A stretch of 64,000 bases of DNA from Hydrolagus colliei (lineage: Eukaryota). The notes beneath the pieces were generated by a model that did not search any database, was not told the origin of the DNA, and saw nothing but the letters and a program-made list of their open reading frames with translations. Below are positions 8,269 through 53,680 of this stretch, in pieces. Location: contig CM068757.1 in the NCBI GenBank assembly GCA_035084275.1, positions 9,796,001 through 9,860,000 of the forward strand, in the 5' to 3' direction. Position 1 is the stretch's first letter, and the number at the start of each line of letters is the position of its first letter. Both the position numbers and the translations under genes were made by a program.

Positions 8269-8280
8269 GAAAGTGAAAGA
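8269..8280 (+). promoter_or_regulatory. IRF-E/ISRE-like element, gene 1 promoter
   Basis: GAAAGTGAAAGA, starting 111 bp upstream of ATG 8380. Confidence 0.65.
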
Positions 8281-8379
8281 GTGGTTTCCATGCATAGGTG
8301 ATAATCGCTAGGACTATGAGATAATCGGAGCAAGTCGTTTTATTAAGAACATCCTGCACGAAATCCTGTGGAGGGAAGA

Positions 8380-8431
8380 ATGGCGATTCTAGCTTTGTGC
8401 GTTGTCACTGTCTCTTTTATCTCAACATCAG
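8380..8431 (+). CDS. Gene 1 exon 1, signal peptide
   Basis: MAILALCVVTVSFISTS, followed by a G|gtaagt donor. Confidence 0.8.
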
Positions 8432-11400
8432 GTAAGTATCATTGAGCCCATCTCTTTCTCGTCCTCAAACCTGGTTTGGTTGTAAAATGTGAACAGAGGA
8501 ACCGTTCAGCTTCACGCCAGCCTCTGTTGCGTTTTCCATTCTCTACTTATCGTTTCTTTTAAAATAGAAATCTTTGATTTTCATCAATCAATTTTGCAAA
8601 TGTCTAAAGTTACTGTTGTAGCTATGGAAGCTGATGTGAGTGTAAACGATGTACCCATGATAGAGTAAGAAGCCTTCAGAGCGAACTATAATATTGCATT
8701 TGATAGTGGTTTAGCATTTACAATTTTGTTGTCCATTTGATAATTATTATTTCAAACAGAAATATTTTTCTTCACCTTTGTTTGTTCTCCATCACTTGCA
8801 AATATATCCCAAGTTACCATTATAACCGGTACTGTAACTTCAGACATTTGCAATGGGAAACCCGCCTTGAAATGAAAAATACAGAGCGTTACTTTGTCAA
8901 GAAAGCCCGTGGAGTGAGCAGAGTTGCTGTAGATATGGTAAATGTATACATGAGGCTTTCTGTCGCCAATGGGAGGTGGTGATGGAAATGAGAAATATTG
9001 TGGAGTTAGGGAAATCTGAATAGGTCGAAGCATAGATTTGAGGTTTAATGAAAAAGACTTCAAAGCCTGGATAATGCCATGAATGGTTGGAATTTCCAAG
9101 TCAGAGATAAAGATCTTAACTTTGTGTGCATTTTGTGGTTCATTTCTCCCTCAGCTTAATAATGTAAAGAGATCAACTGTATTGTTAATTTGTTTTTAAT
9201 GTCTAGTCTTTTTTTAAGAAAATAAAGTTAAGGAGGCATTCATATTATATCTAGGGGGTTTGCCAGCACCCTGAATGAAGTGTTGTCATGGTTGTAGAGT
9301 TTTATAAAGTAAGGTTGTTTGTGTGCTAATTGGATCTCAGCTTTCACATTAGTTACACTCTGCAGTTACAAGGAGTGAGAAGGTGGGTATTCTGGGAGTG
9401 CCAGAGCAGAAATAGCTGAAAGGGCAGAGAGGGCAGAATACATGAGGCAGGCCAGTGTTTGCTGAGTGAAGCAAGTAAATCTCACTTGAAATAATAATAA
9501 TAACAACCCTTGTATTTGATTTAGCGCATTATCATGTCGTTGAGGCGGCTTTACAGAATATACTCTTTGTGAGCAAAATCTTATCACTTTAAATGACTAT
9601 CGTGCTTATGAAAGATGTGTAATACCCACTAATTCTGTTTGAAATATTTTGTTTGTACTGTATATAGGTGCCTTGGATTTGGAGATATTTCACTCCCCAA
9701 AGAAAGTTTTGGCAAATACAGATGTTCTTCTCAATTGTAAAGTAACTGGTTACGATAAATCAGACTTTGAAATCAAACATGTAGCTGTTACATGGAACGT
9801 GGTTTACTCAAGTGGAATTAAAAAAAACTTGTATGTATTCAATGGAGGAAAGCATACAATAACAAGACCTGGAGCAAAAATCTTTGATGAAGAAATACTG
9901 GAAGGAAATGCCTCACTTTATCTACCATCTGTACAGATGGAGGAGAGTGGTGCATACACCTGCACTGTTTATGTTACCCCAGAAAGTGAAGAAAAGAGTG
10001 CAGAGCTGCAGCTGATAGGTAAGGCTGTCAAAAGATGGCAAGGCTGCCAAAACACATCTCACGGCCTGAAATTCTACTTAGTATGGCTAAATTTATTGTT
10101 TCAGGGCACTTGTCAATGAAAGAGAAAATAATTTCATCTTATTAGTCCAGCAATGTTTGACATGGACTAACTGGGCTGAATTGTTTCCATCCATATCATT
10201 CTGTGTAACTCCAGCATTTGATGGATTTATTGGAATCATAGAAATTTTTGCCATTGCAAATGCCGCATTGTGTTGTGCCAGCTCCTTCAAGAACAATCCT
10301 TTCAGCCCCATTTACCTACTCTTTTCCCGTATCCCTGTAGGGGACCCTTTGTAGGCTATGTCTGGTTCCCTTTTGAAGTACAGTATGGATTTTGCGCCAG
10401 CCAGCATACCTGGCAGGGCATTCCATATCTTAATAATTCTGTGCATGAAATCATTTCTTCTAGCCTTGGAAGGTTTTTATGTGGTACGACCCTGAGGTAA
10501 GATAGTACAGAAGCAATGGATAAATCAAAGGGTTAATTTATTAATTATAAAGACGGTTATTAAACAGTTACAACTGCAAAAGATGATTCAGGGCAGGCTC
10601 ACCTCGACCTTCGCTGGGGACACCAACACACCAATAATCCTTTGGCTAATTGTTTAGCCATGAACCCACATGGACCATAGGATACACTATCTCACAGTGA
10701 CTGATACTGTCTCAACAGTGTCCCAATGGTATCCTAATGGTGTCCAAATTCTTAACATTTGTTTTATTCTTTTATACCCCAAATTTGGAAACGTGATGAT
10801 GAAATAAGGTGTAGGCAGAGGCCATTCTACCCAATCAAAGTTCACAGTTTGTTGTTCACTCATATTCCTGAACTGATCCATCCAATCGTGTTACCACACA
10901 TGGGATGCCCCAAGGTTTATCAGGGTTTTAATCTCAGGAAGTTGGAGTTCCTCTGATACCATATTTGAAGAGTTCAATTCGACAGTTAATTGTCCTTTCT
11001 TGACACCTTCACATCGTAATATCCTTTGAAGATCTCATCCAAGCAGACTGGAAGGCACCAAGAGTCAACAATTAATCAGGACAGTGTCAGGTTAACTTGA
11101 AGCTATACACATTTCTGATCTTGTGAATGTTGACTTCGGGTCTTCTTCGTAGTCTCTTACATCAACACATTGTCCATTTTATTGACTTGAGATAGACTGC
11201 TAGACACTATCATTCCAAATAAAGAAAGGAATAACACCTATCCATCAAGTTTTTATCAACACAATCACAAACACAAACCTCACTCCATTTGGTCCAAACT
11301 CTCTGTCTTGCATTCCTTAAGATCAATCAAGATTATTCCAGTTTTCACATACACTTTGGGGTATCAAACAATAATTTTAATAAAGATTCTATAGCTCCTC

Positions 11401-14400
11401 TTACAGCCTCCCCATTTGCTCATTTACTAACTTAAAATTTATGCCCTCTAGTTACTGACTCATTAACCAGTGGAAATAATTTCTCCCGATTATTTACTCT
11501 ATCACATCCCCTCATAATTTTAAGGATCTCTTATCAGGTCACTTCTCACCATTTTATGTTCCAACAAACAAAGTCACATTTCCTCTGTTCTTATAGGTCA
11601 AACCATTAACTCCAGGTATAATCCTAGTAAATATTCTCTGCCCTGCCTCCTTCCAACTCATTCTCATCTTGTATAACCCGTTTTTCTTCTCCACAGCTCG
11701 GCCAGAGATCAGCTTGTCCACTGCTGGTAACAAGGGTTCATCGAGGTCAATCAGATGTGAAGTTAGCAGATTTCATCCCGAGAAACTTGAGATAAGTTGG
11801 TTCAAAACATCACAAGGAAAAACAGAACATGTTTTAAGTAATACTTCAACTGAAGCTCCTGTTAGAAACAAAGATGGGACGTTTAATGTTTTCAGTACAT
11901 TGAAAGTTGTATCATCAGAGGATGAAGTAATCGATGACAATGCCAAATATAAATGTACTGTGAAGTACGGAATATTTCCTGATACCATTACAGCTGAAAT
12001 ATCATTTCAAAAATCAAATTATGGTAAGCTCTATTTTGAGAGTAATGTAATTTTCACTTAAATTTTGATTTACGGTTATCATTGCTTGTTCTCACTTAAA
12101 CCAGGGCTAAATGAATGAGTGTAGAGAAATTAAATCTGTTTATAGATTTTACGTCCTACACCAATACAAGGTACTAATATAAAGTAGTCCAGCTTCTATC
12201 CCTCTCACAGAATCCAAACAGCTCACCTTTGAGATGCAAATTATGTAGTTTTAGTCACTCGTCTTCCTTAATCTTTCTTTGCTGTTTTTTATACTGTCGA
12301 CCATTCAATCCTCTTTGATCATCTCTCCTCTCTCATTCAGCTTCATGGGATGGACTCTCCTGATTATTCCAGTCCTATCTGAACTATTATCTCTGTTTCA
12401 TTTCTTCAAGTTGTTTCTCCTATTCCCCCAGAAAGTAACGTAGAACAAACATTAGGCTAGATCTTCAGTCCCTTCATTTCCCCCATCTCCCTCATCTACA
12501 TGTCCTTTCTTATTGATGTCAACCACGCTCATGGACTACATTTTTATGTATATGCTCATAATCCCCAAATCTACCTCCTGAATTAGTCATTTTCTTCAAC
12601 TCAACTTGAACAAAATGACAGCTAATCTTCTCAGCTCTCACCAGTGCTTCCTCACCATTGGTTCTCATACCTCAATCTTCCTGGCTGCTCACTCCGTCCC
12701 ATTAAAGCCCCTCCCTAAATCCCCCAACTTCTTTGTCTTTTGAAACATTCCTGTAAACCTATTTTTTGACTATGCCTACAATCACCTCCCACATCTTTTC
12801 TCCCTCATTCCCTGCTTGGTGTTGGAGGCAGGGAAATAGTAAGGAAAAATAATTGAAATACAGGACACATAAAAGTGTTCTACACCTTTGTAAATGTTTC
12901 TCAATTTGGGATTAATTTTATTGTAATAAAATGATATTGACCTCAGTAGGGAAATCATTTGGTCAGCCAGGGTTCTTGTGCCCAGAATGAGAGAAAAAGT
13001 GATACCAAAACGGGTTTTTGAGATATTGAAGATAATTAATGAGAGTGGATAGTTAAAACCTCTGACTTTTTTTATTGCCGTGGCACAAATCATATCTAAG
13101 TTTCATCTTTTCTTGTTACAAACCCAGTTCCAGCAATAGTTGGAGGTGTTGGTGTTCTGCTGGTGTGTGCCTTATGTGTAGCCATTTGGATTTATTGTAA
13201 AGGTAAGATGTTCCTCATGAAGAAACAATACAGATGTTATTTAGTTGATAAATGCTTTGAAATCTCTGCTGAAAAAGAATCTAAAAAATATTTTCAAGAG
13301 ATAGAATAGTGTGGATCTTGATTTATATTTCCTGCTGAATTGCACATAACATTGCAATTCAGTGAGCTGAGAACCGAATGGCGAGTTGAGAGCCGACCAG
13401 AGTGAGCTGCGACCGGAGTGAGGCAAGACCAGAGTGAGAAGGAATTGGGTGAGAGGGTAGAATTAGGTGCAGTGGGGGGGAAGTAAGTGCGAAGTTGTAA
13501 AATATATACAATATTATATAATATTGACAATAATTTAAAACATATCTGTGAACATGGCTGGGCAGCTGAGAACCAGGGCATGTGGCACGTAGGAACTCCA
13601 GGATGCTTTGTGCAACCTAGACAATCATGTATACAGGAAGTGCTTCCGGCTGCTTGAGCTTGAGCTCAAGATTTCTGAGCTCGAAGGGAGAATGGAGTCA
13701 CTCCATTGTATATGGGAGGCTGAGGATTTCATGGATCAAACATTTCAGGAGGTAGTCACCCAACAGCCACCGAGGGTTCAGAGGGAGAGTGACTGGGTGA
13801 CAACCCGGCATGGTAGGAAGAGGGGATGGGCAGTGCAGAAATCCCCTGAAAGTGTGGCACTCACAAAGCGGTACTCTGTACTGAATACTAAGGGCGTTGA
13901 TACGTCGGGGAAAGAGTAGGAAAAAGTAATTGGTTGAACAGGGGGAATGTAGGGAAGAGTGTAAATGCAGTTGTCATTGGGGATACAACAGTCATAGGTA
14001 TAAACAGGCGTTTCTGTAACCAAAGACGTGAGTCTTGGATGGTATGTTGCCTCACTGATGCCAGGGTTGAAGACATCACAGAATGAGTGAATAAAATTCT
14101 ACAGGGGGAAGGAAACATCCAGAAGTGGTGGTCCAATTTTGGATCCATGATGTCGTGGAAAAAAACAGGCTGAGATGCTATTGGGAGAGTATCAGAAGTT
14201 GGTGAAGAAACCAAAGAGTAGAACCTCAAAGGTGGTAATCTCTGGATTACATTCAGTGCCTCATGCTAGTGAGTTTCAAAATGGCAGGATCATGCACATG
14301 AATGCATGGCTGGAGAAATAGTGCAGAAAGGATGGTTTTAGATTCCTAGATCATTTGGACCAGTTCTGGGGCAGGTGGAACCTCTACAAGATGGATGGGG

Positions 14401-16934
14401 TACATCTAAACAGGGCTGGGACCAATATCCACGAGGGAAGTTATCTAGTGCTGCAGGGGAGGCTTTAAACTAATTTTGAGTGGGGAAGGGAATGCAAAAA
14501 GCAGGGGTCCAATAAAATTAGATAAGACGGGGGGAGGGTGGGGAGGGGGGAATGCAGAACAGGCCAAGTCATCTTGGAGTGTGACAAACAAGATTGGTGA
14601 GCTGCAGGCTCAAGTTGCCGCAGGGGGATATGATATAGTACAGCAACGGAGACTTGGCTCAAACATAGGCAAGAATGGGAGCTGAATATTCCTGGCTATA
14701 CAACAACAACAAAATTACATTTGTATAGCGCCTTTCACATCAGGAGGACATCCCAAGACATGGAAAGCACTATACAAAATGTAAGGATTATTATTATTAT
14801 TATTATAAGATTCTATGATGCTACGAACATTTAAATGAGATCAGTGTCTTTGCCTCAGCCACCTTTTCTGACAAACTGTCCGAACCATTAATTATCTTAT
14901 CCATAAAAAAAACTTCCTGGGGTATGTCCTGAAATTGCCATTTCAATTTTAAACCCATGTTCTCTTGCCTTGGTCCATCCTAAAGCATTATTCTGAGTTC
15001 CTTTTTTATATTATCATGCATGAATTGGTACTGCATTTCAAAATGATATTTATTTTTAATCTATTTTTAAAACAAATTAATTGTTTTTTTGCTTCACTTG
15101 TTTCATTCAATTAGATACAGCAAAGCGTGAATACAATCAAGTCAAGCACGATGATTCCATTGAATCCAAGTCTGGAACTGATAAACCTCAGCAAACACCC
15201 ATTGAATGCAAACAATTTTGCATTACTTCTGATGAACTTGCCACTCCCCTTAAACCACATTCCACTGCCCCTAAACCACCACTTTCCACTGCCCCTATAC
15301 CACCACTTTCCACTGCCCCTAAACCACCACTTTCCACTGCCCCCAAACCACCACTTTCCACTGCCCCCAAACCACCACTTACCACTGCCCCCAAACCACC
15401 ACTTACCACTGCCCCTAAACCACTTCTTACTGACCCTCATGAAACTCCAACTGACCCTAAACCAACTTCCACTGACCTTCAACGAACTCCCGCTGACCAT
15501 AGACCACTTCCCGTTGTCCCTAAACCAACTCCAACTGACTCTCAACCAACTCCCACAGACCCTCAAACAACTCCAACTGACCCTCAATCAACTCCCGTTG
15601 ACCCTAACCCACCTCCCACTAGCCCTAAACCACATCCCACTGACCATAAACCACCTCCCACAGACCTTAAACCGACTCCCACAGAACGCAAACTAACTCC
15701 CACTAACCCTCAACCAACTCCCATTGACCCTCAACCAACTTTCACAGACCCTCAACTAACTTCCACTGCCCCTAAACCATTTCATACTGACCTTAATCCA
15801 AGTCCCAATGAACGCAAACCACCTGCTACTGAGCCTAAACCTCATCCAGCTGCCCTTAAACCAAACACTGCTGACCATAAACCAACACCCACGGAATGCA
15901 AACCATCTCCCACTGACCCTCAACCAACTCCCACTGACCCCAAACTACCTCCCATTGACCCTAAACCACCTCCCACTGACCCTAAACCAACTCTAAATGA
16001 CCCTAAACCACCTCCCACTGACCCTAAACCACCTCCCACTGACCCTAAACCAACTCTAAATGACCCTAAACCACCTCCCACTGACCCTAAACCACCTCCC
16101 ATTGCCCCTAAATCACCTCCCACTGACTCTAAACCACTTCCCACTGACTCTAAACCACTTCCTACTGACCCTAAACCAACTCTAAATGACCCTAAACCAC
16201 CTCCCACTGACTCCAAACCAACTCTCACTGACCCTAAACCGCCTCCCACAGACCATAAACCACCTCCTGCTGCCCCTAAACCACCTCCCACTGACCCAAA
16301 ACTATCTCCCATTGACCCTAAACCAACTCTCACTGACCCTAAACCACCTCCCACTGACTCTGAACCAACTCTCACTGACCCTAACCCACTTCCCACTGAA
16401 CCTAAACCACCTCCCATTGACCATACACCACCTCCTGCTGCCCCTAAACCACCTCCCCCTGACCATAAACCACCTCCCACTGACCATACACCACCTCCCA
16501 CTGACCATAAACTACCTCCCACTGACCCTAAACCACCTCCCACTGACCCTAAACCAACTCTAAATGACCCTAAACCAACTCTCACTGACCCTAAAGTACC
16601 ACCCACTGACTCCAAACCACCTCCCACAGACCCCAAACCACCTCCCACTGACCCTAAACCACCTCCTGCTGCCCCTAAACCACCGCCCACTGCCCCTAAA
16701 CCACCTCCCACAGACCATAAACCACTTCCCACTGACCATAACCCACCTCCTGCTGCCCCTAAGCCAACTCCCACTAATCCTAAACCACCTCCCACTGAAC
16801 CTAAACCAACTCCCACTAAACGTAAACCACCTCCTACTGATCCTAAATTAACTCCCACAGATCCTAAACCTCCTGTGCTTGACCCGAAATCTGCCCCCAT
16901 TGAACCAAGTTCTGTTTCCGTTGAACCTGATTGA
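8380..16934 (+). CDS. NCR3LG1-like: Gene 1: B7-H6/NCR3LG1-like type I membrane protein, SP-IgV-IgC1-TM plus ~600-aa Pro-rich tail (874 aa)
   Basis: Exons 8380-8431, 9668-10018, 11697-12023, 13128-13202 and 15115-16934 total 2625 nt, open, all introns GT-AG phase 1. V motif RPGA...GNASLYLPSVQMEESGAYTCTVYVTP and C1 motif CEVSRFHP...W...NKDGTFNV...YKC resemble B7-H6 as I recall it. Family-level call, not orthology. Confidence 0.85.
9668..10018 (+). CDS. Gene 1 exon 2, IgV domain
   Basis: 117 codons. Motifs LLNC, VTW, ASL and GAYTC. Confidence 0.92.
11697..12023 (+). CDS. Gene 1 exon 3, IgC1 domain
   Basis: 109 codons. Motifs CEVSRFHP, ISW, NKDGTF and YKC. Confidence 0.92.
13128..13202 (+). CDS. 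Gene 1 exon 4, transmembrane helix
   Basis: VPAIVGGVGVLLVCALCVAIWIYCK, with a ccag| acceptor and g|gtaag donor. Confidence 0.85.
13290..14700 (+). mobile_element. CR1-type LINE 5' part (5'UTR, degenerate ORF1, start of ORF2)
   Basis: 5' subrepeats (ccagagtgag). ORF1-like HVYRKCFRLLELELKISELEG, followed by an esterase-like remnant (gtcattggggat...tgttgcctcactgatgccagggtt). Endonuclease start NKIGELQAQVAAGGYDIV...ELNIPGY. Confidence 0.7.
15115..16934 (+). CDS. Gene 1 exon 5, Pro/Thr/Asp/Lys-rich tail
   Basis: ttag|at acceptor in phase 1, 606 aa open to TGA, largely PPTDPKP-like repeats. Confidence 0.8.
15260..16900 (+). repeat. Coding minisatellite: 7 x 24-bp units (TAPKPPLS) then ~70 x 21-bp units (PPTDPKP)
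   Basis: Consensus near actgaccctaaaccacctccc. Unit number estimated from span divided by 21. Confidence 0.95.
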
Positions 16935-17094: not shown

Positions 17095-17815
17095 GGGTGG
17101 AAATGGCAATCAACCCAACGTCAGTACCAGGGAAACATCTGGAGACTATAATGCAGGACAATATAAATTCTCACTTAGAAAATATGGTTTAATAAAGGAT
17201 AGTCAACATGGATTTTTTTAAAGGCAGATCGTGTCTGATAAACCTAATAGAATTTTTGGATTAAGTGACTGAGAGGGTGGGTGCAGGTAGAACAGTGAAT
17301 GTAGTTTATCTGGATTTTCAAAATGCATTTGACCACACAAGGGTACAAGGGTACCACACAAGTGATTTATAAACAAAATAGAAGCCCACAGTATTAAAAA
17401 GGGATGGTGGCAATGCAGATCCAGAACTGGCTAGGAGACAGAAAGCAGAGAGTGGTAGTGAACAATTGCTTTTCTGACTGGAGGGAGATATGTAGTGATG
17501 TGAAAGTGGCTCTATAAATACAATTTTTTTTTGGTGGTGGTGGTGCCCCTCAGAGGTCGGTATTGGGACCACTGCTCTTTCTGAACTATATAGATCTGGA
17601 CCTGGATATAGGGAGCACAATTTCCAAATTAGCAGATGATACTAAGCTAGGATATGTAGTAAATTATGTGGAGGATAGACTCCAAGAGGACTTAGACAGA
17701 TTGGTGAAATGGGCAGGAACATGGCAGATGAGGTTTAATGTCGAGAAATGCGAAGTGTTGCCTTTTGGTAGGAAGAATGAGGAGAGACAGTATAAGGTAA
17801 ATGGTACCATTTTAA
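17095..17815 (+). mobile_element. CR1-type LINE reverse transcriptase fragment
   Basis: Remnants of SCLINLIEF, VVYLDFQNAFD, VLGPLLF, ISKLADDTKLG and QMRFNVEKCEV, with frameshifts. Confidence 0.85.
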
Positions 17816-18164
17816 CAACAACAAAACAACACTTGTATCGCGCCTTTCACATCAGTAGGACGTCCCATCATTCCATCTTTGCTTGGTTTCATTAGTGCTG
17901 CAAACCCCAGTGAGTTGAACGGAACTCAATCCTGGTGACCCTTTGAATTACTTACTCTTTCGCCTCATTCAAGATCTAGCTCTTTGACCACACTTTCGAT
18001 TATCTTTCCTCTCCTCACCCCGTTTGTCTTCCACTTCCGATTGGATCCCCAGCCAGCGTCAAACAAGTTGGCGTGTACTGTATTATTAATTTGAAAGGTA
18101 TTATGTATAAGGTATTGTATATAATATAATCATATAATAATATAACATAATAAACAATAAAATG

Positions 18165-18343: not shown

Positions 18344-18421
<78 letters not shown>

Positions 18422-21736: not shown

Positions 21737-22288
21737 GTGAGGCTGTCAAATCCAATTCCATGTCCTGAAAATAAAACCTAGATTTAGCCTGCCATTCTGT
21801 AAATCTTAATCTGGAAACCAGATTGGTTTTGTGGAGTTGCAGAAAAGTGACTTCAAAATTATGATTGAGTATAAGAAATTTCCATAATTCAGCGTGAATT
21901 TAAATTGTAAGAGAAAATTGTCTCACAGGCTAAGACCGTGGGTTCCTGGAATGGAGGGACGTGTGTTAAGTGTGCCAACAATTTTTTTTAAAAAAAGCAA
22001 CATCTGAGCATATATAGATACCGGATGATAATCTGGAAGAGAAAATTTGTTTCTTCTTTAAAAAAAAATGCAGAACACCATTGGAATGTAAAATGTCTCA
22101 ATTAAAATAATGATGTTATATATGCCTAACATGCAGAAAGATAGCATCAAGCATCCCCCCCACCCCAACACCCCTATTTAAATTCTGTGACTGGTGCATT
22201 TGTTGGATGATCCCTGTGAGGCTGAGACCAGCGGGGGGAGCTGGCTGTACAGCTCGGGTTGCTGGGTTGTCTGCGTAACATCCAAAAA

Positions 22289-22304
22289 GAAAGTGAAACT
22301 GAAA
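22289..22304 (+). promoter_or_regulatory. ISRE/IRF-E, gene 2 promoter
   Basis: GAAAGTGAAACTGAAA (three GAAA half-sites), starting 112 bp upstream of ATG 22401. Confidence 0.75.
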
Positions 22305-22400
22305 TGCGACTTTTTTTTATTACAGTAATTTCGGGAACAGTTCAAAATGGTTCCGATCAGAGTCGGCCGGCGACAGTGGCTTAGGGTAAAGCTTCCAGCC

Positions 22401-39980: not shown

Positions 39981-39992
39981 GAAAGTGAAAGC
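39981..39992 (+). promoter_or_regulatory. IRF-E, gene 3 promoter
   Basis: GAAAGTGAAAGC, starting 131 bp upstream of ATG 40112. Confidence 0.7.
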
Positions 39993-40111
39993 GTGAGCTA
40001 CAGAGAGAGAGAGAGCGAGAGAATCGGGGAGAGACCTGGGGAGAAGCAGATATATATCAACTGTCCAGCCCTGACGCCCTCCCCCCCACCCACCGACTGT
40101 CGCTGGGGATA

Positions 40112-40175
40112 ATGAACCTGAATCTGCTGCCTGTGTCGCTGTCGCTGCTGCTGCTCACCTATCTGCCACTGTCAG
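40112..40175 (+). CDS. Gene 3 exon 1, signal peptide
   Basis: MNLNLLPVSLSLLLLTYLPLS, followed by g|gtacag. Confidence 0.82.
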
Positions 40176-43100
40176 GTACAGAGCGAATGGACAGGCGCGT
40201 GTTGGGGGGAGTTGAGTCTCGCTGTGTAGCGTTAACGAGTTTGAAAATCATTTCTATGGGCCTCGAGTAGGATGTTTCTGCTCAGCGACTGTTCGCAAAA
40301 TGGTGCCGCTTCCTTATTTCGCGCTGCATTGAAGCCCCCCAAAAGAAATTCACAAGAAAGAAAACTGAGGCTATTTTTATGTTACAGTATTTGTATTATT
40401 GTTGTGATTACTTGCTCTGTTTCACCAGTTAGTTATCATCCATACTGTTATTTCTATATTAATCCTTGCATTTGATAGACAACAACAACAACAACAAATG
40501 ACACTTGTTACAGTCTCCTTCATATTGGAAAGACAGATAGTCAGGGTTTTTTGGATCAGAGCTGGGAGTTAGGGTCAGGAGGGGTGGAGGGGATGGGAGG
40601 GTGGCTGGAGGCATGGTCGAGAAGGAAGACCTTTAGATGGGACTTCAAAGAGCAAAAGACGGGAGAGTCGGAGGGATTGGGGGATGCAGTTCCAGAATGT
40701 GGGGCCAGAGATGCTGAATGCGCGACCACCAATGGTGGGGAAGGAAACGCGGGGGCCCTGAAGCAGGCAGGTGTTCACCTAACTGGGGGAGTGGACAGGT
40801 TGGTAGGAATTGGGTGTTTGGAGAGGTAGGGTGGGGGAGGGGGGTGGGGGGAGCAAGACCATAGAGAGCTTTGGAGGTGGCAACGAAAGCTTTGTACTCG
40901 ATTCGCTGAGGGATGGGGAGCCAATATAGCGCCTTTCACACCGCTGAGACGTCTCAAAGCGCTTCACAAAAAGACCCGGATGGTATTCCCTATTCGTGGG
41001 ACATGTTGATAAGCGCAAACTGCAGAAAATATTAAATATAAGAGGAACAGAACAGGCTTTTTTTTTAATTGCCCGCAAAAATATACCGTCAATTCATTTT
41101 AAAGTATGTTCTGTGAAGCTCAGGCCACCCAGTTATTTGTATGAAACACCTTGATACTTGCTCCCACTCTGTAATGTAAACTGTTGCTGTTTCATCCCAC
41201 AAAAAATGAAGTGGAATTTCAAGCACTGTAAATTTAGACTGAGGGGAAATTTCTTCCCCTTCACCCATCTCCTATTGGCAGGTTTGGTGATGGGTAAATT
41301 CCTTGAAAGTCTGACTAATTTTATTTTGGTTGCTCTGTATAGAACAGGTTAATAAGTGGGTATTACAAATTTTAATATCTAAAGGGTGGATTTTTCGTTC
41401 TTTATGGTGTATACAGCATTATTTTTGTGATGGATATGATTTACGCACTAACTTTCGCTTTTCTGTTAAATTACCACAGTGGAAGATGTCCTCACTGTAC
41501 TGATGGATTCAGGAGCTATGAACACCATGGTAAATAAGGATGTTTTACTGAAATGTCAGGTACCTGGCTTTGAATCGAGAACCATTGACCTTGCAAGTGT
41601 TAGCGTTGAATGGTACTTCTCGAAACCTCCTGATGTCGCTAGGAAACTGGTATACAAATTTGGAAGCAGCACACACACACCTCATCGAAAGGGAGCAAAG
41701 ATATCTGATGATAAATTGAAGAAGGGCATCGCTTCCCTGTTGCTGTTGAGTGTGGGATTCCAGGATGAAGGACAGTATGAATGTATTGTGTTTATCACAT
41801 CTGACAGTGGAAGGGGAAATGTGGAAATGTTTGTTTCAGGTAAGTGGCTATTGGGGCTTGATCAATGGGATTTTTCAAAAGGGAGAACAAATTCTGACTA
41901 GTTTTTTTAAAAAAAAGATATGATGCTTTTTACATGCTGTATCATTCTAATTCCTGCAATCTTGTTATGTTATTGCTATTCTATGTTCCAAAACACCAAC
42001 AGTGCAAATGAGACCTTATACTTGCACAGCTCTTATCATTTAAAATAATGTAATTAAGCGTTTTACAGACAACATGGAGGGTGGGGGGAAGGAGGTACGT
42101 GGAATGGGGGGAGAGTGGAGGATATTGACAGAAAGCAGTCAAAAGACTGATTTTGAGGAGGGATCTGAGGGTAGCGTGAGGGTGTAGTGTAAAGGAATTT
42201 GAGGAGGGTGAGGGCAAAGAATAAGCTTTTTGAGAGAATGCATTTTACTTGGAATTTATGTGGTTGGATCATGGTACAAATTGGTTATAAGTTCTTATCC
42301 CAGTAGATCTATTGTAGGCAGTGGAATTCTTGTAATCCCAGAAGTGTTCTGATTTGGCCTCTTGTAAAGAAATCACTGGATGATATGGTCCTGTCCTCTC
42401 TATGTTCCAGTCCTATAACCTATGGGGTGAATGGGTTGTGGAAGTCCAGGCACCATCATTGATTGATGCCATGGTTACACAATTCAAAAGACCTAGTAGG
42501 TACAGAGAGAAAGTTGCAGAGAAAATGTGAAAATTAAATTTTTTAGATCGGAAGGTTTTAAATATATTTAGATGTTTGATACAGATTTCTGTTCATCTTC
42601 ACAGCTGCACCACAGGTGAATGTAGATCAATCCAATATCATAATCGAAAATGGCACAGAGAAGTCAGTCATGTGCAACATTCACTGGTACTATCCTTCGA
42701 AAATTGATGTGAAGTGGGTTCACAACGAGGATGGAAAACAACAGGTTTTAAAGTCCAAATGCACAAAATCCTCAGTGGTAAACGAAGATGGAACTTTCAA
42801 TCTGTCCAGCCGTCTGACCCTCCGACCAGACCTTACAGACAATGGTAAAACCTACACATGCCTCGTCAACCATAGGACACTCGCTAGTGCCATGAGCAAG
42901 GAAGTTCACCTGACTGTCAAAGGTACAGTCTTTATTTCAGAAACGTTCATCAATCTCCAAAAACTGGTTTGTGATAGAAAGCGAAGGTGGAGTTGAAAAT
43001 ACTGTATGTGAGTCTAGTGATAGGTCTTTTTGGATCAATGTAGTTAGTCTTAGTCTGGGAAGGGGATAAGTCTTTCATCTATGTCTGATAGCCTTCCTCC

Positions 43101-46100
43101 TCCCAGCTGGAAATTGTGCTTCTGTTGGATGCCACGTGAGGATAGGATTAGGCTCAAAACGGAAGTGCCCCCATGTTCAACGCTGACTACCAATCATTCT
43201 TGCACAGGAACTAACCCCTGAGTGAAACAGAAAATTTCATACTTTTCAGGAGGCATACAACTCTGCCTTGTGTTAGCCTGTAACACCATTTTATTTTACG
43301 ATTTGAGATTGCGCAGGATTGTGCAGATTTCTTTTCAGTCTCAATCTGAAGCTGGTTTCTTTTAAGAACCATCAAAAAACCTGCTTTAAAAGGAAGACTG
43401 AATTTAACAGTTCTGCATGACTGTAAATTTTAAGACAAGATGGTCTGACAGGTGGAATTTCAGGTCTTCAGTTGGAATTGTTTTCCATTTTCCAGGCAAG
43501 TTATATTTTGCTTTTTGTAACTCACTGCAGAGCTAAACATGTTGGTTCTTGTGTCTTCTCCTCAGAGAAAGATATTGTTACACCAGTAGGACGAATAGTG
43601 ACGAGTGTGTTCATTACTGTTTTGCTGTGTGCCCTGATCCTGTGTGGAGCATTTTATGCTTACCTTAGAATCTTCAAAAAAGGTAAAAATTATTTGTCTT
43701 AAATTAAAGTACAGTAGTATGTGTACTGTAATTATATTTTTCAATAAAATATATTTGCATATTGTCTATTAATCTACATACTGTATTATGTATTTTTATT
43801 TTGTAATTAATAATAATACATTTGATGTAACATTTTATCATACCATTGAAACATCTCAAAGAGCTTTGCAGAAGTTTAGTGTAAAGTGTAAGGTGTTTTT
43901 GATGTGGCATCCTCAGAACAAATAAATTCAAGTGTGCTTTTCAATGTTATTTTAGTTGCTCCAAAAGTTACAAACATCATTAAGCCACCTCGCTTTGTAC
44001 ATCAGCAAGAAGCTTTCTTGGACTGTGAGATTTCAGGATACAAACCAGATGGTATTTCTATTGAATGGCTGCTGCAAAGAAGAGCGGAATCCAAGGGAAG
44101 CACAATATACAAATGGTCTGACAAAGGCATAGAGCCCACAGAGGGTGTCAGCAGTCACCTTCTGTCTAGCAATGAGACCTTAGATGGGACTTTCATTATT
44201 CAAACATCATCTATTGAACGCCATGGTGATGGGACTTCCAGTGTCAAGTGTCATGTTAAATTGCTGCTTGATATTTTTAAGGATGACAAAGCTATTCTCA
44301 TGCTTCAAGTACGTCATAATATCACGAAAAGCTTCATTACTGAAAGTGTCATCCTGAATGTGGAAGGAGGTATGTAAGCATTCAAACTGTTAGCAGTTAT
44401 TGCTGAGACCAGTGTCTTTTTTTTGTGTTCTGTTTGAGTAGTTACAATTGATGGCTTTAATAAGACTTATTTACAAAAAAAGAGTTTCAGTGATATCATT
44501 ATTTCAGCATTGTCAATCAAACCTCTGATAGGCGACCTTACATAACAAAATATCGGGAGTCATCCACATTGGGAACATCTCAGAAACTGAAAATTCCACT
44601 ACGCTTTAGCCAGTAAGATTGGCCTCAGTGCATAGGTTATGGAGTAAGAGGTCAGCCAAGTCCAACAACCTCTGATTTTGTGTACCTGCAGATTGAAGAG
44701 AAGTTTTTAAACCAGTGTTTTAAAACAAATTGAGTTTCAAATGTGTTTCAAAGTGGAAGTTATTTTTTTGCCACCATATGTCCGACTTTAATTTTTCTTT
44801 CTTACTCAAAGTCCCACCGATGTTGAATGACATTGTGATGCCGCCTCATGTCATCCACCAAGAAGTTCTGGCTCTGACCTGTCCAATTAATGGATTCAAG
44901 CCAAGGCCGCTGGCTGTCTCCTGGTACAAAAGACATAACGACAAGGAAGTGGAAATTGTGAAGGTTGAACCAGAGAAACCGAGAGAGGAAATGTTTGGAA
45001 ATGAAACAGAGAGGCCCAAATATGTCCACAATTTGAATGAGTTGAGATACGAAGATGGCACCTACAGTATCACTAGTATATTAAAGTTTATTCCAACCAT
45101 AATTGAAGACAACAATTCAGAGTACATTTGCAAAATAACACATCCAGCAACAAATGTAACAAAAACCAAAGAAGTGAGCATAACTGTTAAAGGTATGTTG
45201 TGCATTTCTGACCATTGTGTTTAAAATTAATGATAATATTGTTGCATTTGATAATACATATTTCTTATATTTAATATTGTGCCTTTAACATCAGGAGGTC
45301 ATGTCAAAATGCTTCACAGATTTACTGTAAAATGGCACCCAAGTACAGTACATTACTGTGGGCTAAAGTTTTGTCAGAGGTGCAGTCCTTTAGATCAAAT
45401 ATTAAACTGTGGACCCACCTGCCGATCCTGTGGCACTACTCAAATAGAGAAGGAAGTTTCTCCTTGTGTTCAAGCCAACAATCTCCCAAAATAAAAATTG
45501 ATCATTCACTCAATGGCTGTTTGTGAGACATTGCTATGCGCAAACTGGCTGCTGTTTCACCCACAAAATAGTCAAAACAGCTACAGTATTTCATATGAAG
45601 CATTTTGATATGTCTCAATGAGATGAGGCACTTTATCAAATGCAAGTATTATTAATATTATTCTTATTTCATTTGGTTGTCAGCTCTGCCGAAATTTGAC
45701 GACATTATACTGCTTCCAAAGTCTCCTGTTGCGGATGAAATCGTGATCGCCACCTGCAAAGTGCATTCCTTTTTTCCAAGAAACATTACAATTGTTTGGA
45801 GAAAGAATGACGAAATCTTGGCTGAAATGACCCCTGACTCAGAAGCCACCTGCGGGAAAGATGACCTGTTTTATTTTAAGAGTCGGCTGGAATTTGTTGT
45901 GGTTAGAGAAGATTTCGGAAAACGCGTATATTGTGAAATGCTTTCTGATGTTCCTGGAGATTGTGGAAGAGCTGAGTGTCAGCTCGTTCCAATGGGTGAG
46001 TACAATGATAGTCACCTATTTACAGCTTAAATGTGAAGCTTGTCAGCCTAGGACTGGAAGGGTTGCTCTTCAAAAGAGCCAGCATGGACATAATGGGCTG

Positions 46101-48533
46101 AATAGCCTTCATCACTTCTGTAACTTTCTGTGTTCTATCGTCCTATATTCCACCGAATAAGATAGTCACTGTCCAGTAACTCCTAAACAAATACTTTTTT
46201 AGGTTTAGTGTGTGTACAATGATTGTTTATTGCTATTTTTAATTTCTGAGCAACTTTTTTGACAACTTGACGATATGCGTGCTAACTTTGTTTTACTTTC
46301 TGTGTTGAAACAGTAGCATCTCCAATAATAGAATACCTAAAATCCGAGCCACACTTCCCAGAGCCAGGCAAAGAAGCAACCATCAAAATCCGAGTGCATA
46401 GGTACTTTCCGAAGGATGTTATCTTCTTGTGGTTCAAAAATAATGAGCGAGTGGATGAGGCCAACATCAAATCCATTGAGCCTCAGGGTAATTTACAGAC
46501 TGGTCTTTACTATCGAGAGTCCATTTGGAAATTGTTTCTAACCCCAGAAGACCATGGAGCTGAGATTAAGGTTGAAGTTCTACATTTTCCAACATCGCAC
46601 ACTCCTACAAAAGCCGTACTCACCCTGCACCTCGGAGGTACCCATTAACTATATGTTACATTGCTTCTATAATGTACTGTTCATCCGACCATATTGTGCT
46701 TCCACCTCTTATGTTTATAGCTCCCATTCCATGCTAGTTATGGATAAGCACCAAATGGGATTGTAGTTGTTTGAGAATGTAGATGAATAGGATTTGCAAA
46801 GAAAACAGTTTGGACATGATGTGAGAAACAATTGTCCTTTGAAAATTGCTTTTTACAGCAGGGTCAACTTAAATTGTTGAGCCAGTTCATTTTACATTCT
46901 TTTTCCTTTTCAATTTGGTATTTTCAATTCGGTTACTACCCCCGTCTGAGGCCATTGGTACCCATCCACCAGAGGACAGAGTGCCAAATCCTCGTCCTCA
47001 ACCTCAAAGCCCTCCATGGCCTTGCTCCTTCACCTATGTGACCCCATATTGACTTGTCCACTCCCTTGGTTCAACATCCTCCGCCTGGCCCGGTCCACCA
47101 TCGAGCCTTCAGCCTTTGGAACTCCATCCCACAGTTCAGCTCTCCTGATCCTAATTTCCCTTGGGTTCATATACCTGACTGTCGAGCCACTTGGGACGTC
47201 CTCCACACATGAAACATAATTTGATTTTGTTGTACTGTTTTGCAAAAGATTACTATGTGACATTTCTTCATTCATAACTAGCTGAAATGATTATGTCTCA
47301 GGTAAAACAATTTATTTTCTTGTGCTTTTCTTGAAACAGGAATTCCGAAAATTTCAAAAATTGAGTTAGAGCCAGTCGACCCGACCTACGAACAACCTCT
47401 GATCATGAGATGTTGTGTGACTAATTTTTCTCCAAAAGAAATCGTAACCACTTGGTTGCAGGGTGAAACGATCATCTCCGAAGGAGTAGGAAATATAGGG
47501 CCTGAGAAGGATAAAAATGGATATTTCCAGCTGACATCCTCCTTAACGATAAAACCGACCGCTTTGGATTACAATAAAACATTTTCCTTTTTAGTCAAAC
47601 ATAAAGCTTTGCAAGAGACTATTCAAAGAGAAATTCTCCTTAACCTTCCAGGTAGGTTCAAACAGGGGTGACAAACAGATGCCAGTAAGGTTTCCTTGCA
47701 CCCTTGTTGGTGTGCTTGCACTGATGGCGGAGTCTTCATCTATTATGCTCCTAACCTTTGTTCAGCCTAACTCAGTTGGTAGCACTCTCTTGCCTCTGAG
47801 TCAGGAGGTTTTGCATTCAAGTCCCACTTCATGACTTGAAGCTCATAAGATAGGCTGACATCCCTGTGCAGTGCTAGAGGTGTTCTGTATTGTTGGTGCC
47901 ATCCTTCGGATGAAACTTTAAAGCTAGATCTATTTATATATGTAAACTTGTCTGCCACCCATTAAAGTCCTGTGGCACTATGCAAAAAAAGAAAGGAGCT
48001 CCTTCCTGTGTCCTGGCCAACAATCCCTTAGATAAAATTGGGCAACTCATTTCATGGCTATATTATTGTCTCACAAATTGGCTGTCACTTTCACCTACAA
48101 AAATATAAAGTCAGTCACTCACCACACTGTATCTGCGAATGCTTTGAGATATCTATTGAGACTTGAAAGATCAATCAAACACGAGGTTTATTTATTATTA
48201 TTGTATTGTACTGTTTCAGCTTCTGCTCCCACCATATCCGAAATGCAATGTGTTCCAACACCTCCAGAGATAAACAAGCAAACGACTTTCAGCGTTTCAC
48301 TGACCGACTACGCCCCTGAAGAAATTGAAGTGAAGTGGTTCAAAGACAAAGTGCCTTATACAGGTCCAGTGACAAACACCAAGGAGCAGATTGCAGAGAA
48401 TGGACTCTTTGCTTCAGTTACAAAAATCGAATTTGCCCCCGAAAAGTCTGATCAGAACACCACTCTCAGGTGTGAGGTTACTCATCCTGAGACCAAAGCA
48501 GTGAAGGAGATAAAGTACCTAATTTCCTGTTGA
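40112..48533 (+). CDS. NCR3LG1-like: Gene 3: NCR3LG1-like SP-IgV-IgC1-TM followed by 6 post-TM C1 domains (971 aa)
   Basis: Exons 40112-40175, 41480-41839, 42605-42922, 43566-43682 (TM), 43956-44369, 44812-45192, 45684-45995, 46314-46637, 47340-47651 and 48220-48533 total 2916 nt, open, all phase 1. Confidence 0.87.
40484..40980 (-). mobile_element. L2 3' fragment
   Basis: Minus-strand PTIGGRAFS motif and (aac)n tail. Confidence 0.6.
41480..41839 (+). CDS. Gene 3 exon 2, IgV
   Basis: LLKC, VEW, GIASLLL and DEGQYEC. Confidence 0.92.
42605..42922 (+). CDS. Gene 3 exon 3, IgC1
   Basis: CNIHWYYP, VKW, NEDGTFNLSS and YTCLVNH. Confidence 0.92.
43566..43682 (+). CDS. Gene 3 exon 4, transmembrane
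   Basis: EKDIVTPVGRIVTSVFITVLLCALILCGAFYAYLRIFKK. Confidence 0.9.
43956..44369 (+). CDS. Gene 3 post-TM C1 domain 1
   Basis: 138 codons. LDCEISGYKP, IEW and MLQVRH. Confidence 0.88.
44812..45192 (+). CDS. Gene 3 post-TM C1 domain 2
   Basis: 127 codons. LTCPINGFKP, DGTYSITS and YICKITH. Confidence 0.9.
45684..45995 (+). CDS. Gene 3 post-TM C1 domain 3
   Basis: 104 codons. ATCKVHSFFP, IVW and VYCEM. Confidence 0.9.
46314..46637 (+). CDS. Gene 3 post-TM C1 domain 4
   Basis: 108 codons. TIKIRVHRYFP, FLW and IKVEVLH. Both canonical Cys are absent. Confidence 0.86.
47340..47651 (+). CDS. Gene 3 post-TM C1 domain 5
   Basis: 104 codons. MRCCVTNFSP, TTW and FSFLVKH. Confidence 0.88.
48220..48533 (+). 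CDS. Gene 3 post-TM C1 domain 6, last coding exon
   Basis: DYAP, VKW, ENGLF and LRCEVTH, then TGA at 48531-48533. Confidence 0.88.
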
Positions 48534-49344
48534 GGTGAGTTTTGTATGTCTGTTTGAACCTGTTCTGGTGCAGCAAAAGATGCTGTGGCATTGTTTGGAC
48601 ATCAAGCAGAGGAATGATGGAACTGGAAGGTGATCGAAGGATTTGGTCAAAGGAGTAGATTTTTCATTGATATTTGAAGCCAGGTGGAGAGGTCGTGAGA
48701 TGGGATTGGTAGATGGAGGGAGTTTGAGATGATGGTGGCTGAAAATTGAACTGCTGATGGTTGAGTGGAGGGTGGCAGAATAAGTTCAGCAGTAATATAA
48801 TAATAAATTATTATTATTACTACAAGCACATAAGAAGCTAGTTTAGACTTAAGTATTTTCCATGGTTTCCAATGGGTTTAACAATGCATTTTGTTCTCCA
48901 CAAAGGAATGCCTGGAAATATAATCCAATCTGCAATATCCATCTTGGTGACCTGAGTACAGAAACGGAACTCAGTCTATCGGAACAAAACATGACGTTTC
49001 TAAGGAGAAGAACAAATTTTTTAAAATGCAATATACAACACTGAGCTGTGTAAAGTGGTCAGCTGAACAGATATTTCAATCAGAATAACACTACTTGTCA
49101 CCTAAATGTGCCTGAACTTTCTTAAATATCTACACCGAATGAAATGTGCTGTAAAGAGGTTGTGTAATAACATCATGTACACAATAGTCAAATGATATTA
49201 TAGTTGTAATTAATATATAGTTGTCAACTGTTTTTATACTGTACTGATATTACATGCTATTTGATATATCATGTTTCTTACCACACGGGATCATGAGAAA
49301 AAAGCTCTTCAGTGCGTTTGATCTTATCCTACCCCCCTACTGTC

Positions 49345-50485
49345 TTTTCATTACAGCATCAGACTGTTTCAAACCCCCGCACAGTTTCCCACGGCGTCCC
49401 TCAGGGCTCTGTCCTCGGTCCCCTTCTTTTCACCCTTTACACGCTCCCTCTGGGCGACGTCATCCGCAGACATGGGGTAAATTTCCACATGTATGCGGGT
49501 GACACCCAGTTGTACCTTTCTGCCTCATCCCTCAACCCCCAGACGATCGATGTTCTGATGTTCTGACGATTCGATGTCTGTCCGACATCGAATCGTGGAC
49601 GAGGGACAACTTTTTGCAATTGAACGTGAATAAGACCGAGGCCCTCCTGATTGGCTCAAGCCAGCGCCTCCGCACATCGGGCGCTGCCAGCCTCAACATC
49701 CAAGGCTGCACTCTCCACCTCACAAAGCCAATCAGGAACCTCGGCATCATGTTCGATCAAAAACTTTCCGTCCTCCCCCACATCCGCGCCTTGACCGGCA
49801 CCGCCTATTTCCATCTGCGCAACATTGCCAGGCTCCGCAACTATCTTACCCCCCGCGCTGCCGAAACACTTGTGCATGCTTACATCACCTCACGGCTGGA
49901 CTATGGAAATTCTCTCCTAGTCGGCCTCCCCAGTTCCTCCATTCATAGGCTGCAGGCCATCCAAAACTCTGCAGCCCGTGTACTATCCCGCACCCACCTC
50001 CGCGACCACATAACCCCCACCCTCGCCCGTCTCCAGTGGCTCCCCATCCTCCAGAGGATCGAGTTTAAGATCCTCGTCCTCACCTACAAGGCCTTACACG
50101 GCCTTGCCCCATCCTACCTAACTGATCTACTCTCCCCCTACATGCCCACCCGGACCCTCCGTTCAACAGGACTTGGCCTGCTCCAAGCCCCCCGCCCGAA
50201 CTGCATCGGAGGCCGGGCCTTCAGTTTCTCCGCTCCCACCTTATGGAATGCCATCCCTCAATCCCTCCGTTTCGCCTCTTCCCTTTCCTCTTTCAAGGCC
50301 GGTTTGAAGACTTTCCTCTTCGATCGTGCCTTTTGTTCCACCCCGAACTCTTTTACCTCCCCTTCGTGTTTCACCCCTTCCCAAACACTCCCCTCCCAGC
50401 TCGGGTCACATGCCTCTTGTTCAGCGCCTTGGGAAGTCCTCCCGACGTGAAAGGCGCTCTATAAATGTAAATTGTTGTTGTTGTT
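49345..50485 (+). mobile_element. Best-preserved L2-type LINE 3' part (RT C-terminus)
   Basis: [16 protein letters not shown]...[10 protein letters not shown], one stop, then a 278-aa ORF (LNVNKTE, AYITSRLDYGNSLL, QWLPILQRIEFKIL) and tail aaaggcgctctataaatgtaaattgttgttgttg. Confidence 0.9.
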
Positions 50486-52769: not shown

Positions 52770-53655
52770 CTGTCACTCCACTCCCTCTTCAGTGAAAAAA
52801 GTGCCTGTATTCCCCCTCCCACTCCATACCTCCTTTACCAATTTCTCCCGCCTCCAGTGCCTCCCTCTCCCCCTTGCTCCTCTTTCCCTTCTTTCCCAAT
52901 CTCTCCCCGCTGTGCCCCTTTTCCCCATGCCCTCTCTGCCCCCCTCCCCCCCTGTGCCTCTCCCCCACTATCCCTTTCTCCCCCCTTTGCCAAGTTCTCC
53001 TGCCTCCTGTGCTCCCCTCTCCCTTCCTTTGCCCCTCTCTCCCCCAGGACTCATTGGTTACCGCTCGATAGTTCGAAGGTTCGTTAGTCCGAAGCTTTCC
53101 CTAACCCTAACCTTTGGACTAATAAACCTTCGGAGTTCTCCCCCCACCCTTTGCCAATCTCTCCAGCCTTCTGTGTCCCTCCCTCCCTTTGCCTATCTCC
53201 CCCTGTGCCCCCCTCTCCCCCACTATGCCCCCCATCTCCCCGAGCCCCCCTCTCCCCCACTATGCCCCCCATCTCCCTCCTTGTGACCCCCTCTCCCCCC
53301 CACTATGCCCCCCATCTCCCTCCTTGTGACCCCCTCTCCCCCCCACTATGCCCCCCATCTCCCCTTGTGCCCCCCTCTCCCCCCCACTATGCCCCCCATC
53401 TCCCTCCTTGTGACCCCCTCTCCCCCCCACTATGCCCCCCATCTCCCCCTGTGCCCCCCTCTCCCCCACTATGCCCCCCCCTCTCCCCCCCACTATGCCC
53501 CCCATCTCCCTCCTTGTGACCCCCTCTCCCCCCCACTATGCCCCCCGTCTCCCCTTGTGACCCCCTCTCCCCCTACTATGCCCCCATCTCCCCCTGTGCC
53601 CACCCCTCCCCCCCACTATGCCCCCCCCCCTCTCCCCACCCCTCCTCCTCTGTCC
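52770..53655. repeat. C-rich low-complexity region and ~45-bp minisatellite upstream of gene 4
   Basis: Recurrent ccccactatgccccccatctccc..ttgtg.ccccctctc units from ~53200. Confidence 0.9.
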
Positions 53656-53666
53656 CCGTTGATAAT

Positions 53667-53680
53667 GAAAGTGAAACTGA
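53667..53680 (+). promoter_or_regulatory. ISRE/IRF-E, gene 4 promoter
   Basis: GAAAGTGAAACTGA, starting 124 bp upstream of ATG 53791. Confidence 0.75.

Follow-up and report, generated by a model that had tools for sequence, protein, structure and literature searches.

The window analysed here is a 64-kb stretch of the chimaera Hydrolagus colliei genome (GenBank assembly GCA_035084275.1, contig CM068757.1, positions 9,796,001 to 9,860,000). It carries four immunoglobulin superfamily (IgSF) genes, and the same 10-bp sequence, GAAAGTGAAA, is found at nearly the same distance upstream of all four start codons and again in the promoters of related genes from sharks, rays and a frog. We think it probable that GAAAGTGAAA(C/G) is a functional site for the interferon regulatory factor (IRF) family in the proximal promoter of every member of this gene family, where it would couple transcription to interferon, virus or pattern-recognition signalling.

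By direct reading, the start codons are at 8380 (gene 1), 22401 (gene 2), 40112 (gene 3) and 53791 (gene 4). Each ATG starts a short hydrophobic leader which closes at a phase-1 GT donor. The 10-mer lies 111, 112, 131 and 124 bp upstream of the ATGs of genes 1 to 4, exactly the distances that an earlier note made from the letters of this DNA had reported, and it is in the sense orientation each time. The window contains five copies in all, every one on the + strand. Dinucleotide-preserving shuffles of the window (n = 100) gave an expectation of 0.37 copies and a maximum of three (five or more in 0/100); upstream of the four genes the motif is a non-random element with a fixed position. The earlier note listed the four promoter copies and omitted the fifth, GAAAGTGAAAT at 1518. 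This copy has a T at position 11 and lies in a unique segment that separates tandem repeat units; downstream of it no leader/V/C1 gene was found. A fifth promoter was rejected because of the T at position 11 and the missing gene, and we judge the copy at 1518 to be a chance copy, one stray being within chance expectation. The strict IRF element (IRF-E) pattern GAAA[GC][TC]GAAA[GC][TC] has exactly three matches in the window (both strands), which are the sites of genes 2, 3 and 4; three is also the number of full matches claimed before. The gene 1 site misses the pattern at the last base alone. A loose pattern, GAAANNGAAA, has 19 matches with both strands counted. The third GAAA half-site ascribed to gene 2 is also present (GAAAGTGAAACTGAAA).

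The surrounding promoters had been described as lacking obvious similarity and this holds, with small exceptions. MAFFT gave no usable alignment of the four upstream regions and left the motif itself unaligned; after this failure k-mer sharing and motif-anchored comparison were used instead. In an unbiased k-mer test on the 400 bp 5' of each ATG, all 6- to 10-mers common to the four genes tile GAAAGTGAAA (300 shuffles gave 0.09 shared 6-mers and no shared 8-mers). Genes 1 and 2 have ATCCAAAAAGA in common directly on the 5' side of the motif (8255-8285 and 22279-22305), and in gene 1 a degenerate copy, GAGAGTGGAGC, comes after it. On the 3' side, a GA-box, ACAGAG(A/G)GAGAGAGAGCGAGAG, is common to genes 3 and 4 (40001-40022 and 53719-53740). 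Both are faint traces of promoter ancestry. A second positional element, AATTCTGT, occurs about 220 bp upstream of the ATG in genes 1 to 3, within a TATA-like sequence in genes 2 and 3 (TATTTAAATTCTGT and TATTAATTCTGT). It was not found upstream of gene 4 or in the elasmobranch and frog promoters examined, and its candidacy as a core-promoter TATA was rejected for that reason. It is kept as an unexplained element of the chimaera lineage.

Six orthologous loci, each with the coding sequence start at locus position 6001, were compared with the four paralogues, making ten promoters (Table 1). Five of the six carry the exact 10-mer and the catshark has a one-mismatch copy; in all ten genes the motif is 56-131 bp 5' of the ATG. 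At each of the five exact-match loci the promoter 10-mer is the sole + strand copy in 33-55 kb, and the Scyliorhinus locus (L005) has zero exact copies on both strands. Counting both strands of about 700 kb of sequence, 9 of the 11 copies are these promoter sites. When the ten promoters are aligned on the motif, information content is maximal over the 10-mer and near zero in the flanks. AAAGTGAAA is invariant in 10/10 promoters, position 11 is C or G in 10/10 and position 12 is T or C in 7/10. No other k-mer rose above the shuffle null across the ten promoters, even with one mismatch. A candidate second element about 40 bp 3' of the motif, (A/G)AATCGGGG, was rejected (3/10 promoters, not above the shuffle null). 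In Hypanus the annotated start (MKKSGEAMGC..., L006:6001-6024) was probably mis-called, because the ATG that aligns with the GCCATGGG start of the other species is 7 codons downstream. In sawfish, a second IRF-like array, GAAAGTGAAAATGAAA, is found on the - strand of an intron near the 3' end of the gene (L002:24504-24519); an intronic enhancer, the promoter of a neighbouring gene and a chance match are all conceivable.

Chimaeras and elasmobranchs split more than 400 million years ago, and cartilaginous and bony vertebrates about 450 million years ago. Because a perfect island of 10-11 bp has persisted over >400-450 million years in otherwise unalignable sequence, the comparison indicates that the 10-mer is under purifying selection. 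The V-C1 regions of the paralogues are 28-38% identical and neutral DNA is therefore expected to be saturated. On this sequence evidence the motif is almost certainly a selected cis-element.

The constrained bases match the definitions of the IRF-E, G(A)AAA[GC][TC]GAAA[GC][TC], and of the interferon-stimulated response element (ISRE), whose core is GAAANNGAAACT. The sites of genes 1 and 3, sawfish, stingray and frog read GAAAGTGAAAG. This string is what IRF1 binds in the human PLAAT4 promoter, and it has been employed both as a reporter for IRF1 and as a probe in pull-downs (PMC10201418). Four other sites (genes 2 and 4, Rhincodon and, with one mismatch, Scyliorhinus) read GAAACT, and GGGAAAGTGAAACT is an ISRE probe bound by activated IRF3 (PMC4863739). 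ISREs usually lie <200 bp from the transcription start site (TSS) in sense orientation, and they are needed for the induction of fish promoters by interferon (IFN), poly(I:C) and IRF3/7 (PMC3688568). Cartilaginous fishes possess all IRF groups, all STATs including STAT2, and an IRF9 with a conserved STAT2 interface (PMC11841930). The element is very likely a functional IRF-class promoter element, and there is a good probability that IRFs are the proteins that read it. In the proposed mechanism, GAAAGTGAAA(C/G), an element of the IRF-E/ISRE class, would stand in sense orientation at or a few tens of bp 5' of the TSS in each family gene, and IRF DNA-binding domains would occupy its two GAAA half-sites, which stand in tandem and are separated by the invariant GT spacer. 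The best-fitting readers would be those of an IRF1/IRF2-type IRF-E, and the ...GAAACT versions may also suit ISGF3 and IRF3/7. Binding would then place the transcription of these V-C1 ligands, whether secreted or displayed on the cell surface, under the control of interferon, virus or pattern-recognition signals.

Some observations weigh against this reading. The 5' GG that favours ISGF3 is missing in 10/10 sites, and classical induction through type I IFN and ISGF3 is therefore less certain than IRF1/2-type binding; together with the invariant GT spacer, its absence makes a pure ISGF3 site a poorer fit than an IRF-E of the IRF1/IRF2 type. KappaB, gamma-interferon activation site (GAS) and SXY/X-box-like partners do not recur across the ten promoters. 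E-box, ETS/PU.1, CCAAT, Sp1, cAMP response element, GATA and TATA sites do not recur there either. IRF sites may serve constitutive or lineage-specific IRFs (IRF2, 4, 6, 8), so an IRF-dependent gene need not be interferon-inducible. In the literature found on human B7-H6, the closest solved relative of these genes (see below), regulation is ascribed to c-Myc and inflammatory stimuli and an ISRE is not mentioned. Interferon or virus inducibility would be the most probable mode, and we hold it with moderate confidence.

A functional IRF-family or PRDM1 site could instead set constitutive or lineage-restricted expression, or repression, by IRF2, IRF4/8, IRF6 or PRDM1 competing with IRFs, and interferon inducibility would then not follow. 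We consider this rather unlikely. The same core is bound by all IRFs, the ISGF3-type 5' GG and recurrent GAS/kappaB partners are lacking as described above, and PRDM1-type sequence does occur. The earlier note had pointed to a PRDM1/Blimp-1-type site in gene 1, and AGTGAAAGTG is present there, overlapping the motif; as a feature of the cluster it is not conserved. The strict PRDM1 consensus (A/C)AG(T/C)GAAAG(T/C)(G/T) is matched by gene 1 (CAGTGAAAGTG) and gene 3 (AAGTGAAAGCG) only. The GAAAG that PRDM1 requires is found in 5/10 promoters and the other 5/10 have GAAAC. PRDM1 therefore cannot account for the conservation and was rejected as the common reader, though it may act on some family members. 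Four sites (the GAAACT group above) have the full GAAAGTGAAACT core of an IRF3/ISGF3-type probe. Moreover, IRF1 is itself IFN-inducible, so that even sites read by IRF1 alone are usually IFN-responsive.

That a factor outside the IRF family reads the 10-mer, the IRF consensus match being a coincidence, is improbable. The constraint is limited to 10-11 bases, as such a reading would allow, but the constrained bases are exactly those of the IRF-E definition, positions 11 and 12 included, and binding of the identical sequence has been validated for both IRF1 and IRF3.

The place of the motif relative to the TSS bears on whether it acts as DNA or as RNA. One Logan RNA-sequencing (RNA-seq) contig, L007 from run SRR5172151, is 3,517 nt long and intronless, and its open reading frame translates exactly to one of the homologues (P0010). 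It has 79 nt 5' of the first in-frame ATG and the motif is absent from it, even with one mismatch allowed; in its batoid-like relatives the motif is found at -77 to -82. ATG triplets between motif and start codon are depleted (6 against 12.6 expected, P = 0.03), and in an equal stretch 5' of the motif they are not (12 against 11.6). In gene 4 a minisatellite has replaced all sequence up to 15 bp 5' of the motif, which is intact; the 5' limit of the retained sequence is thus set by the motif. These three lines, each weak singly, suggest a TSS at or just 3' of the motif. Against this placement, L007 may be 5'-truncated and comes from a batoid-like species, the upstream-ATG test is weak, and the TATA-like AATTCTGT at -220 in genes 1 to 3, if a core promoter, would put the motif inside the 5' untranslated region (5'UTR). 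Gene 2 has an extra in-frame ATG at 22347, 54 bp 5' of the leader ATG, and a start there would extend the protein by 18 residues ahead of the signal peptide; with a T-rich TATA-like box around 22312, the TSS would fall near or past this ATG.

If the motif were transcribed, it could act in the RNA, as a purine-rich element of the 5'UTR or first exon with an effect on splicing, stability or translation. GAA-rich elements are able to act as RNA enhancers, the motif is on the sense strand in 10/10 genes, and AATTCTGT at -220 could set the TSS of genes 1 to 3 upstream of it. However, the sole transcript has a 79-nt 5'UTR that lacks the motif, the depletion of upstream ATGs starts 3' of the motif and not 5', and neither gene 4 nor any of the elasmobranch and frog promoters has the -220 element. 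Sense orientation is also usual among promoter-proximal ISREs (PMC3688568). We regard an RNA-level role as very improbable. A chance match or a functionless ancestral leftover of gene duplication or gene conversion is effectively refuted: some co-ancestry is expected among four paralogous promoters and shows faintly between genes 1 and 2 and between genes 3 and 4, but the 10-mer is perfect while its flanks are unalignable, the proteins are merely 28-38% identical, the motif recurs in the corresponding position in another six species, a frog among them, and a specified 10-mer has a chance of about 1e-4 on one strand of a 100-bp window.

The predicted IRF site can be compared with known IRF-driven promoters. 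The GGGAAAGTGAAACT-type probe we take to be the ISRE of ISG54/IFIT2. Like a classical ISRE of an interferon-stimulated gene (ISG), the sites of genes 2 and 4 and of whale shark contain GAAAGTGAAACT, identical to the core of the IRF3-bound probe (PMC4863739); unlike it, the sites here lack the 5' GG (10/10), and half of them end in GAAAG rather than GAAAC. They resemble the ISREs of IFIT genes in being promoter-proximal and sense-oriented (PMC3688568), whereas two or three ISREs are typical of IFIT promoters and a single element is found here. With the PLAAT4 element GGAAAGTGAAAGTGAAA (PMC10201418) and IRF-E of the positive regulatory domain I (PRDI) type they share AAGTGA hexamer repeats and the G/C-T/C spacer. 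PLAAT4 and synthetic (AAGTGA)n arrays differ in having at least three half-sites; there are two here, and three in gene 2. PRDI of the IFN-beta promoter is an IRF1-IRF2-type site. MHC class I genes carry an interferon consensus sequence/ISRE, AGAAGTGAAACT, within the enhancer A-ISRE-SXY module. The likeness is that an immune-recognition gene of the IgSF C1 kind has one IRF-E-like site some 100 bp from its start, with the GT spacer and the 3' half GAAACT; the difference is that recurrent kappaB (enhancer A) or SXY-like partners are missing across the ten promoters. The promoter of CD274 (PD-L1) carries IRF1 sites; it too is a B7-family V-C ligand with promoter IRF sites tied to interferon signalling, and it belongs to a different B7 subfamily from the genes studied here.

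The identity of the four genes is an addition to the earlier note, which left them unnamed. Exon limits were predicted from phase-1 splice sites (Table 1). Pfam identified V-set and C1-set exons downstream of the leader in all four genes. In 4/4 genes the C1 exon is followed by a transmembrane (TM) exon which ends ...KG(K/N) at an AAG/GTAAA donor. In genes 2 to 4 six or seven extra C1-set exons splice in frame, giving models of 930-1020 residues with zero internal stops. The closest solved relative of the V-C1 part is human NCR3LG1/B7-H6 (E 5e-25), with CD276/B7-H3 ranking behind. Annotated proteins with the long architecture, labelled 'uncharacterized protein', occur in Callorhinchus milii (79% identity to gene 3), about 12 sharks and rays (42-49%) and amphibians (~30%). 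The gene 3 model minus its TM exon is 79% identical to Callorhinchus XP_007885687. In a V-C1 tree gene 3 pairs with the Callorhinchus protein (82% identity) and the elasmobranch genes join next; genes 1, 2 and 4 are long-branched, with V-C1 identity of 28-38% to gene 3 and among themselves. A bullfrog protein annotated as NCR3LG1-like nests among the amphibian long-form members, in a tree with long branches and without mammalian sequences, whose placements are unsure. Gene 3 is taken to be orthologous to those elephant-shark, elasmobranch and frog genes in which the same motif is found. Because of the tree placements and the 28-38% identity, the window is considered to hold four old B7-H6-like genes, which by sequence are deep paralogues of an uncharacterised B7-H6/NCR3LG1-like IgSF family.

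UrIg and UrIg2 were tried as identities and rejected. UrIg genes are defined by a VJ-type V domain with a J-like end, followed by C1 domains (PMC12227049). The V exons of the window end in B7-H6 style (..YTCTVYVTPESEEKSAELQLI) without a J motif, and the genes are therefore not UrIg; the match to UrIg2 has E 3e-7 vs 5e-25 for B7-H6. With B7-H6/NCR3LG1 the genes share the V-C1 ectodomain, the TM segment after C1 and the NCR3LG1-like frog protein that falls within the family. The difference is that most members run on past the TM segment with about seven C1-set domains. Human B7-H6 has a gag-like cytoplasmic tail.

The TM-like exon stands between the first C1 exon and the C1 array, which makes for an odd topology. 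The RNA contig (131-3007) and nearly all annotated orthologues (P0002-P0010, P0016-P0019) keep the TM segment at residue ~240-260 and read V-C1-TM-(C1)7, with a second TM segment absent. The Cys-Trp-Cys triads of the tail C1 domains are near-invariant in 13/13 sequences from chimaera to frog, which points to disulfide-bonded folds of the extracellular type and conflicts with a cytoplasmic location. Conservation of N-glycosylation sequons was uninformative for the topology of the tail. Among four shorter models (742-743-aa isoform X2 and a 773-aa catshark model), only those of Cetorhinus and Carcharodon (P0012 and P0013) lack the TM segment at residue ~250. Because of these two models, the TM exon may be a cassette that switches between a membrane-bound and a secreted form. 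The V-C1-TM-(C1)7 topology may perhaps be the more unusual feature of the locus.

Table 1. Promoter motifs, related elements and predicted gene structures in the window, and the corresponding motifs at orthologous loci. Positions are those of the window unless given relative to the ATG.
Feature	Position	Strand	Remarks
Gene 1 IRF-E/ISRE-type motif cAGTGAAAGTGAAAGAg	8269-8278	+	111 bp 5' of ATG
PRDM1-type string AGTGAAAGTG	8266-8275	+	overlaps gene 1 motif
Gene 2 motif GAAAGTGAAACTGAAA	22289-22304	+	112 bp 5' of ATG; three half-sites; includes full ISRE core GAAAGTGAAACT
Gene 3 motif GAAAGTGAAAGC	39981-39992	+	131 bp 5' of ATG
Gene 4 motif GAAAGTGAAACT	53667-53678	+	124 bp 5' of ATG
Fifth copy GAAAGTGAAAT	1518-1527	+	T at position 11; unique sequence between tandem repeat units
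Second positional element AATTCTGT	8158-8165; 22181-22188; 39887-39894	+	gene 1, -222; gene 2, -220; gene 3, -225
C-rich minisatellite	53195-53651		43-bp unit, ~10 copies; fills region 5' of gene 4 motif, ends 15 bp from motif
Gene 1 core	8380-13202	+	leader 8380-8431; V 9668-10018; C1 11697-12023; TM exon ~13128-13202
Gene 2	22401-35715	+	leader 22401-22464; V 24290-24640; C1 25570-25890; TM exon ~26500-26613
Gene 2 tail, seven C1-type exons	27205-27612; 28440-28820; 29303-29614; 31233-31553; 32572-32883; 33252-33566; 35411-35715	+	stop in last exon
Gene 3	40112-48533	+	leader 40112-40175; V 41480-41839; C1 42605-42922; TM exon 43533-43682
Gene 3 tail, six C1-type exons	43956-44369; 44812-45192; 45684-45995; 46314-46637; 47340-47651; 48220-48533	+	stop in last exon
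Gene 4	53791-62620	+	leader 53791-53848; V 55073-55405; C1 55659-55982; TM exon ~56759-56875
Gene 4 tail, six C1-type exons	57313-57744; 59405-59770; 59928-60242; 60452-60778; 61454-61765; 62307-62620	+	
Heptranchias perlo (sevengill shark), exact 10-mer	-119 from ATG	sense	flank gcggcGAAAGTGAAACGagg
Pristis pectinata (sawfish), exact 10-mer	-82	sense	flank ccgccGAAAGTGAAAGTacg
Rhincodon typus (whale shark), exact 10-mer	-98	sense	flank tcggtGAAAGTGAAACTcgg
Hypanus sabinus (stingray), exact 10-mer	-56	sense	-77 from conserved second ATG
Mixophyes fleayi (frog), exact 10-mer	-91	sense	flank ataGAAAGTGAAAGTaga
Scyliorhinus canicula (catshark), one-mismatch copy AAAAGTGAAACT	-84		

Other features were observed between and around the four genes. 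A 617-codon open frame at 15081-16931 consists largely of 76 copies of a 21-bp unit (repeat 15251-16874), is Pro/Thr-rich (KPPPTDP-type) and has no Pfam match; it lies 3' of the gene 1 TM exon, in the position that the C1 array takes in genes 2 to 4. Window positions 1-4500 hold 4-5 copies of a tandem unit of ~0.9-1.1 kb, 62-94% identical, with short open frames (NPMMLF..SEPTGK..) and no Pfam match; the array may represent the repetitive 3' portion of a gene farther upstream. A weak match to the Pfam reverse transcriptase RVT_1 was found at 17518-17892 (E 3.7e-4, below the Pfam cut-off). A long open frame at 49297-50447 resembles a long interspersed nuclear element (LINE) by eye; its main ORF (open reading frame) has no Pfam match. 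Both were judged to be retrotransposon fragments between the genes. Near the end of the window, 63342-63508 and 63511-63833 comprise an N run adjoined by a CTCC/CTGC-rich low-complexity tandem repeat.

The mechanism of the IRF-E/ISRE is already well understood and hence is not itself new. What is new is that a whole uncharacterised B7-H6-like gene family bears such an element, and that the element is letter-perfect at the same promoter place from chimaera to frog although its flanks have diverged past alignment. The footprint, first noted in the four paralogues of this window, thereby gains a phylogenetic range that reaches deep into the vertebrates, and it provides a natural example of deep cis-regulatory conservation found through paralogue comparison. 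For genes that are now annotated only as 'uncharacterized LOC' it offers a hypothesis, namely that they are candidate interferon/IRF-responsive immune ligands. As a tentative and speculative extension, a B7-H6-like family may have been wired to the IRF/interferon system from the base of the jawed vertebrates through one 10-bp site unchanged since the ancestor of chimaeras, sharks and tetrapods, with a V-C1, TM and seven disulfide-type C1 topology that would reflect either a cassette TM switch or Ig C1 domains on the cytoplasmic side. If this is true, the interferon-induced display or release of an NKp30-type ligand would be an ancestral innate-immune circuit. The conservation of the element suggests that natural killer (NK)-type ligands may already have been coupled to the interferon system before cartilaginous and bony vertebrates diverged.

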